Shown here piece after piece: positions 12,601 to 24,600 of a stretch of 64,000 nucleotides of DNA. Location: NCBI GenBank assembly GCA_002269645.1, contig NIVC01003078.1, forward strand, positions 57,126 through 121,125, read 5' to 3'. The position numbers and the translations under genes are program-made. The notes beneath the pieces are model-generated. The model saw only the letters and a program-made list of their open reading frames with translations, did no database searches and had not been told where the DNA came from. The number at the start of each line of letters is the position of its first letter. Position 1 is the stretch's first letter. This DNA comes from Macrostomum lignano. Its lineage: Eukaryota.

Positions 12601-15600
12601 AACCAGGACACCAAACTGATTGGTCAAAAGCCAAAGAAGCACCAGAAAGGCGCATCTAGCGGCCAGGGGGACGCTGATGTGGACACCAGCTTCTCTCGGA
12701 GTAGCATTCATCTGAACTTCTCTATTGAGGTTTGCTATTGTTTTTCTGATCTGATTGGGCGCCATCTTTACTGATTGAGGCGCCAACTTCACTGATTGAG
12801 GCGCCAACTTCATTGATTGAGGCGCCAACTTCACTGATTTGGGCGCCAACTTCACTGATTAAGGTGCCAACTTCACTGATTGAGGCGCCAACTTTATTGA
12901 TTTGGGCGCCAACTTCACTGATTGGGGTGTCAACTTCACTGTTTTTGGCGCCAACTTCACTGATTGAAGCGCCAACTTCATTGATTTGGGCGCCAACTTC
13001 ACTGATTGGGGTGTCAACTTCACTGTTTTTGGCGCCAACTTCACTGATTGAAGCGCCATCTTCACTGATTGAGGCGCCAACTTTATTGATTTGGGCGCCA
13101 AATTCACTGTTTGGGGCGCCAAATTTATTAATTGCATCATATGAAACTATATTTATCTACTTCCATACATTGCGAAGGTCTTGTTGAACACTAAAGACAA
13201 ACATGGGCATGCGAGTACACCAGGAAGCTATAAGGGTACTTGCCTGCACTCGCGCGACTTTTCTTGCAAAAGAAGAGAGAACGCCGAGCTTTGCTTGTAA
13301 CACCCACCCCTAGCCCCGCAAGAAGCCTGCTGCAGGTTGCTTTTTGACCAAAAATTCATCAATCATCGCTCTTTCTTCTCTACCCTTCTCTCTCTCTCGT
13401 CTGTCTTGAAACTTGAAATTCTTTGATCTACAGGCTAGAACGATTTGCATGCTAGCATATTTCTTTTGCTTCAAGCTACGACTTCTCAACTTTAATTTTC
13501 CATTTTCTTATTTGTGCTTTTTTTCTCCGCATGTCTTTACTGCGTTTCATTTTCTTTTGATGTTGATTTTGTCTTTCTATGATTGGCTAGATTCTATTAT
13601 GTCTATCTTTAATTTTCCTTGCCATTGCTTTTCGCATCTCAACATCCCTCATCTCCCATCCCTCATCTCCGATCCCTCATCTCCCATCCCTCATCTCCCA
13701 TCCCTCATCTCCGATCCCTCATCTCCCATCCCTCATCTCCGATCCCTCATCTCCCATCCCTCATCTCCGATCCCTCATCTCCCATCCCTCATCTCCCATC
13801 CCTCATCTCCGATCCCTCATCTCCCATCCCTCATCTCCCATCCCTCATCTCCGATCCCTCATCTCCCATCCCTCATCTTCGATCCCTCATCTCCCATCCC
13901 TCATCTCCGATCCCTCATCTCCCATCCCTCATCTCCCATCCCTCATCTCCGATCCCTCATCTCCCATCCCTCATCTCCGATCCCTCATCTCCGATCCCTC
14001 ATCTCCCATCCCTCATCTCCGATCCTTCATCTCCCATCCCTCATCTCCGATCCCTCATCTCCCATCCCTCATCTCCGATCCCTCATCTCCCATCCCTCAT
14101 CTCCCATCCCTCATCTCCCATCCCTCATCTCTCCATCCCTCATCTCCCATCCCTCATCTCCCCATCCCTCATCTCCCATCCCTCATCTCCCATCCCTCAT
14201 CTCCCATCCCTCATCTCCCATCCCTCATCTCCCATCCCTCATCTCCCATCCCTCATCTCCGATCCCTCATCTCCCATCCCTCATCTCCCCATCCCTCATC
14301 TCCTATCCCTCATCTCCCATCCCTCATCTCCCATCCCTCATCTCCCATCCCTCATCTCCCATCCCTCATCTCCCATCCCTCATCTCCCATCCCTCATCTC
14401 CCATCCCTCATCTCCCCATCCCTCATCTCCGATCCCTCACCTCCTATCCCTCATCTCCGATCCCTCATCTCCCATCCCTCATCTCCCCATCCCTCATCTC
14501 CCATCCCTCATCTCCCATCCCTCATCTCTCCATCCCTCATCTCCCATCCCTCATCTCCCATCCCTCATCTCCCATCCCTCATCTCCGATCCCTCATCTCC
14601 CATCCCTCATCTCCCATCCCTCATCTCCCATCCCTCATCTCTCCATCCCTCATCTCCCATCCCTCATCTCACCATCCCTCATCTCCCATCCCTCATCTCC
14701 CATCCCTCATCTCCCCATCCCTCATCTCCCATCCCTCATCTCCCATCCCTCATCTCCCATCCCTCATCTCCGATCCCTCATCTCTCCATCCCTCATCTCC
14801 CATCCCTCATCTCCGATCCCTCATCTCCCATCCCTCATCTCCGATCCCTCATCTCCCATCCCTCATCTCCCCATCCCTCATCTCCCATCCCTCATCTCCC
14901 ATCCCTCATCTCCCATCCCTCATCTCCCATCCCTCATCTCCCATCCCTCATCTCCCATCCCTCATCTCCCATCCCTCATCTCCCATCCCTCATCTCCCAT
15001 CCCTCATCTCCCCATCCCTCATCTCCGATCCCTCATCTCCCATCCCTCATCTCCGATCCCTCATCTCCCATCCCTCATCTCCCATCCCTCATCTCCCATC
15101 CCTCACCTCCTATCCCTCATCTCCCATCCCTCATCTCCGATCCCTCATCTCCCATCCCTCATCTCTCCATCCCTCATCTCCGATCCCTCATCTCCCATCC
15201 CTCATCTCTCCATCCCTCATCTCCCATCCCTCATCTCCCATCCCTCATCTCCCATCCCTCACCTCCTATCCCTCATCTCCCATCCCTCCTCTCCCATCCC
15301 TTATCTCCCATCCCTCATCTCTCCATCCCTCATCTCCCATCCCTCATCTCCCATCCCTCATCTCTCCATCCCTCATCTCCCATCCCTCATCTCCCATCCC
15401 TCATCTCTCATCCCTTATTTCTCATTCCTCAAATTGTTGAAATATATACACGAAATGTTAGCACCACACGTATGATTATCAGTTTAAATGTAAAGGGCGG
15501 GTTTATTTAAAAATTTACATTAAAGCATCAGGGCAAATAGAAAGGCCTTAAGGCTGCATTTAAACTGGCCCGCTAGACGGCAAGGGAGAGTTTTGCTGAA

Positions 15601-21600: not shown

Positions 21601-24600
21601 GGCGCTAAAACAGCATAACTTCAGATTAGCGCCAAAACATTGTACTCGTAGCGTCAGGCTGGCGCCATAACAGCATAGCGTCAGGTTGGCGCCAAAACAG
21701 CATAGCGTCAGGCTAACGCCAAAACAGCATAGCGTCAGGCTGGCGCCAAAACATTTTAGCGTCAGGTTGGCGCCAAAACATTTTAGCATCAGGCTGGCGC
21801 CGAAAAGGTGTAGCGTCAGGTTGGCGCCAAAACGTTATAGAGTCAGGTTGGCGCCAAAACGTTATAGAGTCAGGTAGGCGCCAAAACAGTATACATGTAG
21901 TGTCAGGTTGGCGCCAAACAGTAGTATACATGTAGTGTCAGACTGGCGCCAAAACTTACTAGTCAGATTGGCGCCAAAACTTACCAGTCAGATTGGCGCC
22001 AAGACTTACTAGTCATATTGGCGCCAAAACTTACTAGTCAGATTGGTGCCAAAACTTACTAGTCAGATTGGCGCCAAAACTTACTAGTCAGATTGGCGCC
22101 AAAACTTACTAGTCAGATTGGCGCCAAAACTTACTAGTCAGATTGGCGCCAAAACTTACTAGTCAGATTGGTGCCAAAACTTACTAGTCAGATTGGCGCC
22201 AAAACTTACTAGTCAGATTGGCGCCAAAACTTACTAGTCAGATTGGCGCCAAAGTTATAGTATCAGATTAGCGCTAAAATAGTGTAGTTTTTTATTATTC
22301 TGCACCAAAAGCAGAATTTCAATGCCTGACTGTCTTTAACTCGCCAGTTCGAATTGCTCAACCCTCCTGCAGGTCAGTCAGTACAATTTCGTCATGGCAT
22401 CGTTTCGAGAGAAAAAATCCGAACCCATGGAGGTGACCAGCCTCGGCGACTACACCGTTGACTACCTGATCGAGACTCCACCTGAGCTGCTGGCCGAAGC
22501 TGCCAGCGGTAAATTCTGCTTCTTCAACACCGTACGAGAGGGAGATTGCGTCACCTACGCTAGCGAGGACGACACGGACAGGCAGTTGTGGGTGCAAGCA
22601 ATCTACAGAGCTACTGGCCAGACTCACAAGCCTGTAGCTCCATCGCAACCGGCTGCTCAGAGGATCTCTAGCACCCAGATGCACAAGATGGCTGGCGAGG
22701 CTGATAAGGCGAAGCGAGCCGGTCTGGAGGAGTTCCTGCACGCTGACCCATGCCAGTGCGATCATGTGGCGCTGTTCCGCAGGCTGCAGCTTCTCACGTT
22801 AGACTATCGATTGAACGATCCCTACACTAGTCTTGGTTGGTTTAGTCCCGGTCAAGTCTTTGTCCTAGACGAGTACTGCGCCAGGTACGGAGTTCGAGGC
22901 TGCCAGCGTCACGTGTTCTACATGGAAGATTTGTTAAACGCCGCCGATAAAGGATTTATGATTGATCCGACTTTGATTCATTATAGCTTCGCGTTCTGCG
23001 CCTCCCACGTGCATGGCAATCGGTTAGTTATGTATATATTATGCTTGCTAACTACTGTCAGTAGCTGTCTAAGGCGGCAATTCGGCCAAATTTACATTTA
23101 TGGCGCCAAACTTACCTCTGTGCGCCAAGTTCTCCTCTTTAGCGCCAAACTCACCTCTGTGGCGCCAAATTTACATCTGTGGCGCCAAACTCACCTCTGT
23201 GCGCCAAGTTCTCCTCTTTAGCGCCAAATTCACCTGTCTGCCGCCAAGTTCTCCTCTTTAGCGCCAAACTCACCTCTGTGGCGCCAAATTTACATCTGTG
23301 GCGCCAAACTCACCTCTGTGGCGCCAAACTCACCTCTGTGGCGCCAAGTTTTCCTTTTAGCGCCAAATTCACCTGTCTGCCGCCAAGTTCTCCTCTTTAG
23401 CGCCAACTTCACCTCTGTGGCGCCAAATTTACATCTGTGGCGCCAAACTCACCTCTGTGGCGCCAAACTCACCTCTGTGGCGCCAAGTTCTCCTCTTTAG
23501 CGCCAAACTCACCTCTGTGGCGCCAAATTTACATCTGTGGCGCCAAACTCACCTCTGTGGCGCCAAATTTGCATCTGTGGCGCGAAACTCACCTCTGTGG
23601 CGCCAAATTTACATCTGTGGCGCCAAACTCACCTCTGTGGCGCCAAGTTCTCCTCTTTAGCGCCAAACTCACCTCTGTGGCGCCAAACTCACCTCTGTGG
23701 CGCCAAGTTTTCCTTTTAGCGCCAAATTCACCTGTCTGCCGCCAAGTTCTCCTCTTTAGCGCCAAACTCACCTCTGTGGCGCCAAATTTACATCTGTGGC
23801 GCCAAACTCACCTCTGTGGCGCCAAGTTCTCCTCTTTAGCGCCAAACTCACCTCTGTGGCGCCAAACTCACCTCTGTGGCGCCAAGTTTTCCTTTTAGCG
23901 CCAAATTCACCTCTGTGGCGCCAAGTTCTCCTCTTTAGCGCCAAACTCACCTCTGTGGCGCCAAATTTACATCTGTGGCGCCAAACTCACCTCTGTGGCG
24001 CCAAACTCACCTCTGTGGCGCCAAGTTCTCCTCTTTAGCGCCAAACTCACCTCTGTGGCGCCAAACTCACCTCTGTGGCGCCAAGTTTTCCTTTTAGCGC
24101 CAAATTCACCTCTGTGGCGCCAAATTTACATCTGTGGCGCCAAACTCACCTCTGTGGCGCCAAATTTGCCTCTCTGTCGCCGAATTTATCTTTGTGGCGC
24201 TAAATTTACCTCTTTGGCGCCTAATTAAACTCTGTGGTGCCAAGTTCTCCTCTCTGCCAAGTTCTCTGTGGCCCTAAATTAACCTCTGTGGCGCCTTAAT
24301 CACCTGGGGGACACTAAATTCACCTTAGGCGCCAAAGTCACCCGAGAACGCCAAAGTCACCTGAGGGGCACCAAAGTCACCCCTGTGGCGCCAAGTTAAC
24401 CATTGTGGCGCTAAACTCACCTCTGTGGCGCCAAGTTATCCTCTTTAGCGCCAAATTCACCCGTGTGGCGCCAAGTTTACATCTGTGGCGCCAAATACAC
24501 TTATGCGGCGCTAAATAAACCTGAGGGACACTAAACTCACCTAAGGGCGCCAAAGTCACCCGAGAGGCGCCAAATTATCTGAAGTTCTCTAATGAAACGG

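Follow-up and report, generated by a model that had tools for sequence, protein, structure and literature searches.

Why do several intronic minisatellites of one gene, with repeat units that otherwise differ, carry the same short GC-rich word in the same orientation? The question is raised by a 64-kb window (64,000 nt, the whole stretch analyzed) of Macrostomum lignano contig NIVC01003078.1, the + strand of which carries a homologue of CAPS/CADPS, the calcium-dependent secretion activator. Tandem arrays in the introns of this gene, named A1 to A4, are built on the core GGCGCCAA. The analysis indicates that A1-A4 are probably one minisatellite lineage that spread to three CAPS introns and diverged, its core being kept by an amplification bias. 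By their sequence, the arrays form a genuine minisatellite family that is dispersed locally and whose palindromic core is conserved, and a pattern that looks like that of a special motif appears to be largely explained by the common descent of neighboring repeats.

Tandem Repeats Finder recovered all four intronic arrays of the preliminary description, with the units given there, on the + strand. A1 (12751-13127; 12751-13122 with 17.8 copies of 21 bp in the program output) consists of about 18 units of GGCGCCAACTTCACTGATTGA and begins 21 bp past the 5′ splice site of intron 12730-17414. A2 (15945-17304; 15947-17304 with 67.7 copies of 20 bp in the program output) has about 68 units of GGCGCCAAATTTAAGATCGA, among which GATCGA and GATCAA alternate to give a two-unit repeat of 40 bp; its middle block (16344-16650) is degenerate, and a degenerate tail extends to about 17345, some 70 bp short of the 3′ splice site. 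A3 lies in intron 20050-22372 and has two parts. Its first part, A3a (21518-21936; 21518-21893 in the program output), contains about 15 units of the 27-bp GGCGCCAAAACAGTATAGCGTCAGGTT, and the second, A3b (21937-22285; 21937-22279 in the program output), contains about 14 units of the 25-bp GGCGCCAAAACTTACTAGTCAGATT, the core of which is lengthened to the 10-bp palindrome TTGGCGCCAA. A3b ends about 90 bp upstream of the exon at 22373-23022. On the other side of that exon, A4 (23085-24576), with about 75 units of 20 bp (75 copies in the program output), occupies intron 23023-24640 except for about 60 bp at each end. It has a 179-bp (9-unit) higher-order repeat, the sub-types GGCGCCAAACTCACCTCTGT, GGCGCCAAATTTACATCTGT, and AGCGCCAAGTTCTCCTCTTT, and a degenerate 3′ part (24157-24580).

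The core GGCGCCAA has 144 matches on the two strands of the window as against 0.85 expected, all of them within A1-A4; outside the arrays, no copy was found on either strand. The minus-strand matches are only those overlapping the palindrome TTGGCGCCAA. The + strand has 126 exact copies (12 in A1, 54 in A2, 19 in A3, and 41 in A4), in one orientation throughout, and 179 copies at no more than one mismatch, among about 190 units. The earlier estimate of 150-200 cores holds for units and is too high for exact cores. Since any word within a repeat is amplified, shuffling the entire window does not give the right null, and each array was instead collapsed to its consensus. One 8-mer common to four of 24 independent arrays was then obtained in 2 of 5000 composition-preserving shuffles.

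The arrays had been counted as four independent ones, which overstates their number. A1 and A2 are separated by a 2.8-kb insertion (13128-15944) that consists of about 515 bp of unique sequence, a 1.8-kb array of the 14-bp unit CATCCCTCATCTCC (13643-15431), and about 513 bp of unique sequence. The exact 15-mer GGGGCGCCAAATTTA brackets this insertion, standing at the end of A1 (13113-13127) and at the start of A2 (15945-15959). The final A1 unit (13113-13127) is of the A2 type, and joining the left copy of the 15-mer to the sequence past the right copy yields a perfect A2 unit. Both junction edges are abrupt, and the outer edges of the arrays are degenerate. Judging by these junctions, a single array was cut by the insertion into what are now A1 and A2. 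Before that, it took up the whole intron apart from 21 bp at the 5′ splice site and about 70 bp at the 3′ splice site. The independent GGCGCCAA loci therefore number three rather than four, and their shared orientation, with a probability of 1 in 4 by chance, carries no weight.

A second interrupted array lies upstream, where a 24-bp array occupies 5119-6561 and continues at 8061-9077, on the far side of a 1.5-kb insert (6562-8050) that contains a different 22-bp array (7043-7669). The sequences at the junctions, ATGAGAATCACC and ATGAGATGCACC, suggest that this too is one array split by an insertion, as in the case of A1/A2. The direct repeats at the ends of the inserts, 15 bp and exact for A1/A2 and 12 bp and imperfect for 6562-8050, belong to the inserts and not to the GGCGCCAA arrays. 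When the two inserts were compared, no significant similarity was found and their flanks were unrelated to each other.

The arrays are related to each other beyond the core. Doubled units were aligned locally and evaluated against 20,000 shuffles. The rotated A1 unit GATTGAGGCGCCAACTTCACT and A2 unit GATCGAGGCGCCAAATTTAA are identical at 16 of 21 positions over the whole unit (p = 1e-4), and A2 agrees with the A4 sub-variant GGCGCCAAATTTACATCTGT (A4b) at 17 of 21 (p = 5e-5), while A3b-A4 and A1-A3b gave p-values of 2e-4 and 1.7e-3, respectively. With the core removed, spacer identity in three independent comparisons was 8/13, 9/13, and 10/17, in total 27/43 (59-69%). In addition, the first A4 unit beside the exon (23102, GGCGCCAAACTTAC...) is the most A3b-like of the A4 units. 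The statement of the preliminary description that the spacers are unrelated is thus contradicted, and the end-to-end alignment of full units weakens its more exotic reading. Array birth nucleated at a protein or nuclease site is not supported, since arrays born independently would be expected to have unrelated spacers. On the other hand, its suggestion of one ancestral repeat that diversified agrees with the unit alignments, the single A1/A2 array, and the A3b-like first unit of A4.

When each spacer was assigned to the nearest array type, 173 of 176 units were nearest to the type of their own array (17/17 in A1, 65/67 in A2, 23/23 in A3, and 68/69 in A4). The arrays therefore evolve separately, and the exchange of whole units is no explanation for the retention of the core. 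The separate homogenization is also seen in the 40-bp and 179-bp higher-order repeats.

How much better conserved is the core than the spacer? When seven unit types were aligned with MAFFT, no columns were invariant other than the seven contiguous ones of GCGCCAA. Between arrays, the core is identical at 24/24 positions and the spacer at 27/43 (Fisher p = 2.4e-4, or 4.7e-3 after multiplication by 20 windows). Within arrays, the ratio of core to spacer heterozygosity is 0.31-0.58 in seven of eight blocks, including the degenerate A2 middle and the A4 3′ part, with a combined rank test p of 0.04. The core does mutate: A4 has sub-units in which AGCGCCAA and GCCGCCAA have become fixed, and GGCGCTAA is the most frequent variant. 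Its CpG is almost never mutated, while the A2 spacer CpG (TCGA) varies in 22-38% of the units. These comparisons point to a moderate constraint on the core between arrays and a weaker one within arrays, which amounts to a modest residual signal. The selection on the core proposed earlier is borne out only in part, in that the core is more conserved, being about half as variable as the spacer within arrays; nothing points to host-level selection, a factor sink, or methylation as the cause.

Single-stranded DNA folding was predicted for 126-nt samples, and the five core arrays had the five lowest energies among 18 arrays (-21.1 to -31.5 kcal/mol, z from -3.0 to -7.6, 0/200 shuffles as good). The predicted stems are pairings of GGCGCC or TTGGCGCCAA between neighboring units, and for the majority of the other arrays little or no folding is predicted. 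These predictions fit the view that the ability to form hairpins or to mispair is the most likely reason for the persistence of the core.

A history of the family may be proposed as follows. The ancestral unit would have been about 20 bp long, roughly GGCGCCAAAYTTAC with 6-7 further bases, and the lineage would have come to occupy three CAPS/CADPS introns, with A1/A2 as one array and A3 and A4 in the introns that flank the next large exon. Each array would have been homogenized alone by slippage and unequal exchange, giving the 40-bp and 179-bp higher-order repeats, and as a result of this separate homogenization the units would have drifted apart, mostly outside the first 8 bases. GGCGCCAA would have been kept in all arrays as the GC-rich, self-complementary part of the unit: GGCGCC can pair with the GGCGCC of any other unit, on the same strand or ectopically, and units that retain it would be the ones copied, by way of slipped or hairpin intermediates or of ectopic pairing. 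The core would thus owe its persistence to an amplification bias (molecular drive) and not to a host function. The crossing of exons into other introns could have proceeded by ectopic repair or template switching, by reintegration of circular DNA, or on a mobile carrier that has since degraded.

Several observations weigh against this history. The spacer-only alignment of A3 with A1 or A2 is not significant, and the alignment of A3 to the other arrays needs several gaps. A3b shows no reduced variability of the core relative to the spacer (ratio 1.05), and several positions of the spacer vary as little as the core does. After correction, the p-values fall no lower than about 5e-3 for the comparison between arrays and 0.04 for that within arrays, in tests that are subject to ascertainment bias as the core was picked as the most conserved block. 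The hairpins are predicted ones, modeled on naked single-stranded DNA, and structure is not unique to the GGCGCCAA family, since the core-less array at 30040-30981 folds nearly as well (z -5.7). Intron 17649-19845, which lies between the GGCGCCAA-bearing introns, holds an unrelated array. Finally, no mechanism of exon crossing was observed, and a masked self-comparison of the window revealed neither shared flanks nor mobile-element termini around the arrays.

Instead of being carried along by amplification, the core could be a binding site, read as TTTGGCGC by E2F/DP or by a GC-box, SMAD-type, or NFI-half-site reader, with host selection keeping about 180 sites as a factor sink, an enhancer or silencer array, or a chromatin nucleation site. 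From the sequence we consider this quite unlikely. The match to the E2F consensus TTTSSCGC pointed out earlier is literal for GGCGCCAAA, with 118 array sites on the minus strand, and TTTGGCGC is present in the literature on E2F binding sites; the greater conservation of the core than of the spacer, both between and within arrays, and the near-unmutated core CpG, as compared with the A2 spacer CpG that varies in 22-38% of units, are also what a bound site would show. However, the consensus matches are found in A2 (52), A4 (44), and A3 (20), and A1 has only 2. A1 carries GGCGCCAAC, with C as the ninth base, and the A4c sub-units carry GCGCCAAG, and hence the block common to all arrays is not the E2F consensus. 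The A2 spacer CpG variants alternate regularly in the 40-bp repeat and may descend from a single mutation event. The CpG observed/expected ratio of unique sequence is 0.79-1.07, near 1, and there is therefore little sign of a methylation-driven decay to argue protection against. Moreover, any 8-9-mer fits the consensus of some factor, and a literature search for the core motif together with minisatellites or tandem repeats yielded only unrelated papers, with none on minisatellites of E2F sites in the library searched. SMAD/BMP-response elements have a GTCT or GNCV at a set spacing downstream of GGCGCC, and by eye no unit fits this arrangement. TGGCGCC as a retroelement primer-binding site was likewise rejected, as the long terminal repeat (LTR) element of the window has the unrelated TGGCGACGACGG after its LTR. 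The known cases of tandem E2F sites consist of two sites in a promoter. Such sites are described for cell-cycle promoters, for example that of p107/RBL1 (PMC2891812), and the arrays resemble this promoter in that a literal TTTGGCGC is tandemly repeated; they differ from it in having 50-70 putative sites per array, deep in the introns of a neuronal secretion gene, and in that one array is without the T-run. Taken at the level of sequence, the arrays are a real but fairly ordinary repeat family, the pattern of which is mostly explained by the common descent of neighboring repeats, and a protein-binding role is not demonstrated.

Other alternatives concern the origin of the arrays. If GGCGCCAA were a site of array birth, such as a nuclease site, the site of a recombination-hotspot factor, or a fragile motif, each array would have been born independently around a pre-existing copy. 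The sharing of the 8-mer by four of 24 independent arrays (2/5000 shuffles), the restriction of the motif to the arrays within the window, and the environmental contigs L015, L026, L090, L112, and L116, which have the same core with other spacers, would fit such births. We nevertheless hold them to be very unlikely, as they predict unrelated spacers whereas 59-69% identity and whole-unit alignments were observed, A1 and A2 are one array, and the metagenome matches are core-selected and mostly GC-rich coding repeats. Delivery of the arrays by a mobile element with an internal minisatellite, of the Helitron/Helentron, miniature inverted-repeat transposable element (MITE), or foldback type and with ends now decayed, is unlikely. 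The 2.8-kb and 1.5-kb inserts are both built of an array between about 500 bp on one side and about 400-500 bp on the other, and their junctions show direct repeats of 12-15 bp; arrays of another word, GACACTAAGAC, stand on both sides of a palindrome that has 158-nt arms; and oyster satellites are largely carried by Helitrons (PMC8268682). Yet the array-masked self-comparison of the window found no shared flanks around A1/A2, A3, and A4, the two inserts are without significant similarity, and A1, A2, and A4 lie within about 20-70 bp of splice sites, with little room for element ends. A last possibility is chance combined with ascertainment, that is, a short word shared within a region that is half repeat, of which the conserved block is the longest surviving run. 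By our own estimate about five shared 8-mers between pairs of array consensuses are expected by chance, and the resemblances of three further arrays (35076-37306, the 55-bp array, and 3699-4542) are not significant. The shuffles (2/5000), the whole-unit alignments (p <= 1e-4), and the contiguity of all seven invariant columns already disfavor this explanation, which we regard as extremely improbable.

How far does the family extend? In the preceding intron, a 55-bp array on the + strand (12179-12433) is a possible relative. The preliminary description had noted a similar GGCGGCAAC in this 54/55-bp unit, which begins with GGCGGCAACATCA. GGCGGCAACATCA is identical to the A1 segment GGCGCCAACTTCA at 12 of 13 positions (p = 0.026), a resemblance that is not significant after multiple testing. 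Two further candidates, the arrays at 35076-37306 (GGCGCTAAAC...; p = 0.07) and at 3699-4542 (with TAGCGTCA in common; p = 0.02), were rejected as members, neither being significant once about 700 pairwise tests are allowed for. A borderline case is that of the 24-mer arrays at 5119 and 8061, the unit of which, in reverse orientation, has TCACTGATT and GAGG in common with A1 (p = 8.5e-4).

The window contains a second family as well. The word GACACTAAGAC is common to the arrays at 10665-11630 (reverse), 37793-37887, and 38313-38541 (z 9.6-16.5), which have different units (12 bp and 25 bp), are up to 27 kb apart, and stand in both orientations. Because this family recurs over tens of kb in both orientations, a general process of local spread is indicated rather than a GGCGCCAA-specific one. 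A near-perfect palindrome at 37894-38302, with 158-nt arms that are 97% complementary and 93 nt between them, resembles a foldback element and is flanked on both sides by GACACTAAGAC-type arrays.

A wider role is conceivable in which GGCGCCAA (TTGGCGCC) would be a genome-wide minisatellite core, palindromic and hairpin-forming or read by a factor, that seeds and sustains intron arrays, with pairing of sense transcripts and a mechanism shared between taxa; we think this improbable. Self-complementary stems in sense transcripts would then pair array with array, A1 with A2, from one end of their intron to the other, and A3 with A4 over the intervening exon 22373-23022, with a possible effect on splicing or exon circularization, and minisatellites with the same core in L015, L026, and L112 would reflect a mechanism common across taxa. 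A metagenome scan for three cores spaced 18-27 bp gave 120 loci, a number that is uninformative on enrichment as the loci are core-selected and without a control. Most of them are coding repeats of high GC content, mainly bacterial, with a period of 18, 21, or 24, and a few low-GC eukaryote-like contigs (L015, L026, L090, L112, and L116) carry GGCGCCAA-based minisatellites of 20-24 bp. L026 matches A4 and L112 matches A1 with 73-77% identity over about 100 bp; in unique sequence, no match between the window and these environmental contigs was found. Minisatellites of 21-24 bp on GGCGCCAA, in low to moderate GC, are located at 920-1460 in L015, 651-777 in L026, 368-660 in L112, and 324-747 in L061, and one environmental contig has 22 copies of the unit GGCGCCAAAAAATCAGACATCAGA. 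L112 and L061 contain several different arrays within 1 kb, like the window.

Among known systems, the human 33.6/33.15 minisatellite family of the Jeffreys type has the core GGGCAGGAXG, a proposed promoter of the recombination or slippage that builds arrays. The present arrays are like it in having different units at different loci around one short GC-rich block of fixed orientation: they lie in three introns (four blocks), have units of 20-27 bp, and share a common block while the rest differs. Unlike it, they have a different, palindromic core and known loci that all fall within a 12-kb part of one gene, where those of the human family are spread over the genome, and their spacers are demonstrably homologous, such that common descent explains most of the sharing. 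For the euchromatic 1.688 and Rsp-like satellites of Drosophila, microhomology-mediated insertion, reintegration of circular DNA, and interlocus gene conversion have been given as routes of spread (PMC7403614), and euchromatic satellites of Tribolium are reported to colonize new sites (PMC11610590). The likeness to these lies in short related arrays in gene-rich DNA, arrays inserted into arrays, and microhomology at junctions; whole-unit alignment above chance and separate homogenization (173/176) are what a locally dispersed satellite family would show. The Drosophila and Tribolium units are 100-360 bp as compared with 20-27 bp here, their spread was demonstrated by species comparison, and here it is a different array-bearing segment that was inserted into the core array. 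Oyster satellites correspond largely to the central repeats of Helitrons/Helentrons (PMC8268682) and resemble the present case in the many short arrays dispersed through genes, element-associated or standalone. In contrast, the GGCGCCAA arrays are without conserved element boxes or flanking termini, and their units are much shorter.

If the core has indeed been kept by driving amplification, the locus would be a compact natural example of a self-complementary block that shapes minisatellite evolution, with three independently homogenized arrays, one dated split, and degenerate edges within 12 kb. For annotation, more than half of the 48-kb gene region is tandem array, and intron sizes and assembly accuracy consequently depend on repeat dynamics.

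The assignment of the host gene is based on stop-free stretches of the + strand that match CAPS. A 212-aa exon matches proteins named calcium-dependent secretion activator, with an identity of 62-68% at best, and the exons 17415-17648, 19846-20049, and 22373-23022, when spliced, encode a complete C2_CAPS domain and a PH domain. The relevant introns, all on the + strand, are 12115-12483, 12730-17414, 17649-19845, 20050-22372, and 23023-24640. The exon at 12484-12729 lies between the 55-bp array and A1, the exon at 17415-17648, directly 3′ of A2, starts the C2 domain, and the exon at 22373-23022, with A3 upstream and A4 downstream, extends from the PH domain to HVHGN. A compact eukaryotic CAPS locus in a Joint Genome Institute metagenome (L121, 5732-8652) lacks both of the introns in which the 17893 array and A3 lie in the window. 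The breaks E1|E2|E3|E4 are common to L121 and the window, E4-E5-E6 are contiguous in L121, and L121 retains the breaks around the 12034 and 12484 exons. The non-array intron ends showed no similarity of the shared, introner-like kind in the self-comparison of the window.

Tandem Repeats Finder reported about 29 arrays with units of 4-55 bp, which cover 53% of positions 1-48250 and are present in almost all introns of the CAPS gene and the gene after it; none was reported at 53-64 kb, the last 11 kb of the window. The sense strand of many arrays is pyrimidine-rich, and the cumulative GC skew declines steadily. Most of the CAPS intron right after that of A4 is occupied by a (GTCT)n microsatellite of about 212 copies (25035-25872). 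Rfam and tRNA scans of the window gave no matches. A Ty3/gypsy-type LTR retroelement at 48723-52966, with 217-bp LTRs that are 98.6% identical and one open frame of 1289 aa for gag, protease, reverse transcriptase, RNase H, and integrase, lies inside a gene with DUF4140/DUF4139 exons (46109-46387 and 54016-54192) and has the appearance of a recent insertion. A MITE-like palindromic sequence of about 290 bp at 26873-27164 has diverged copies 30 kb downstream, at 57171-57794, with 66-75% identity.

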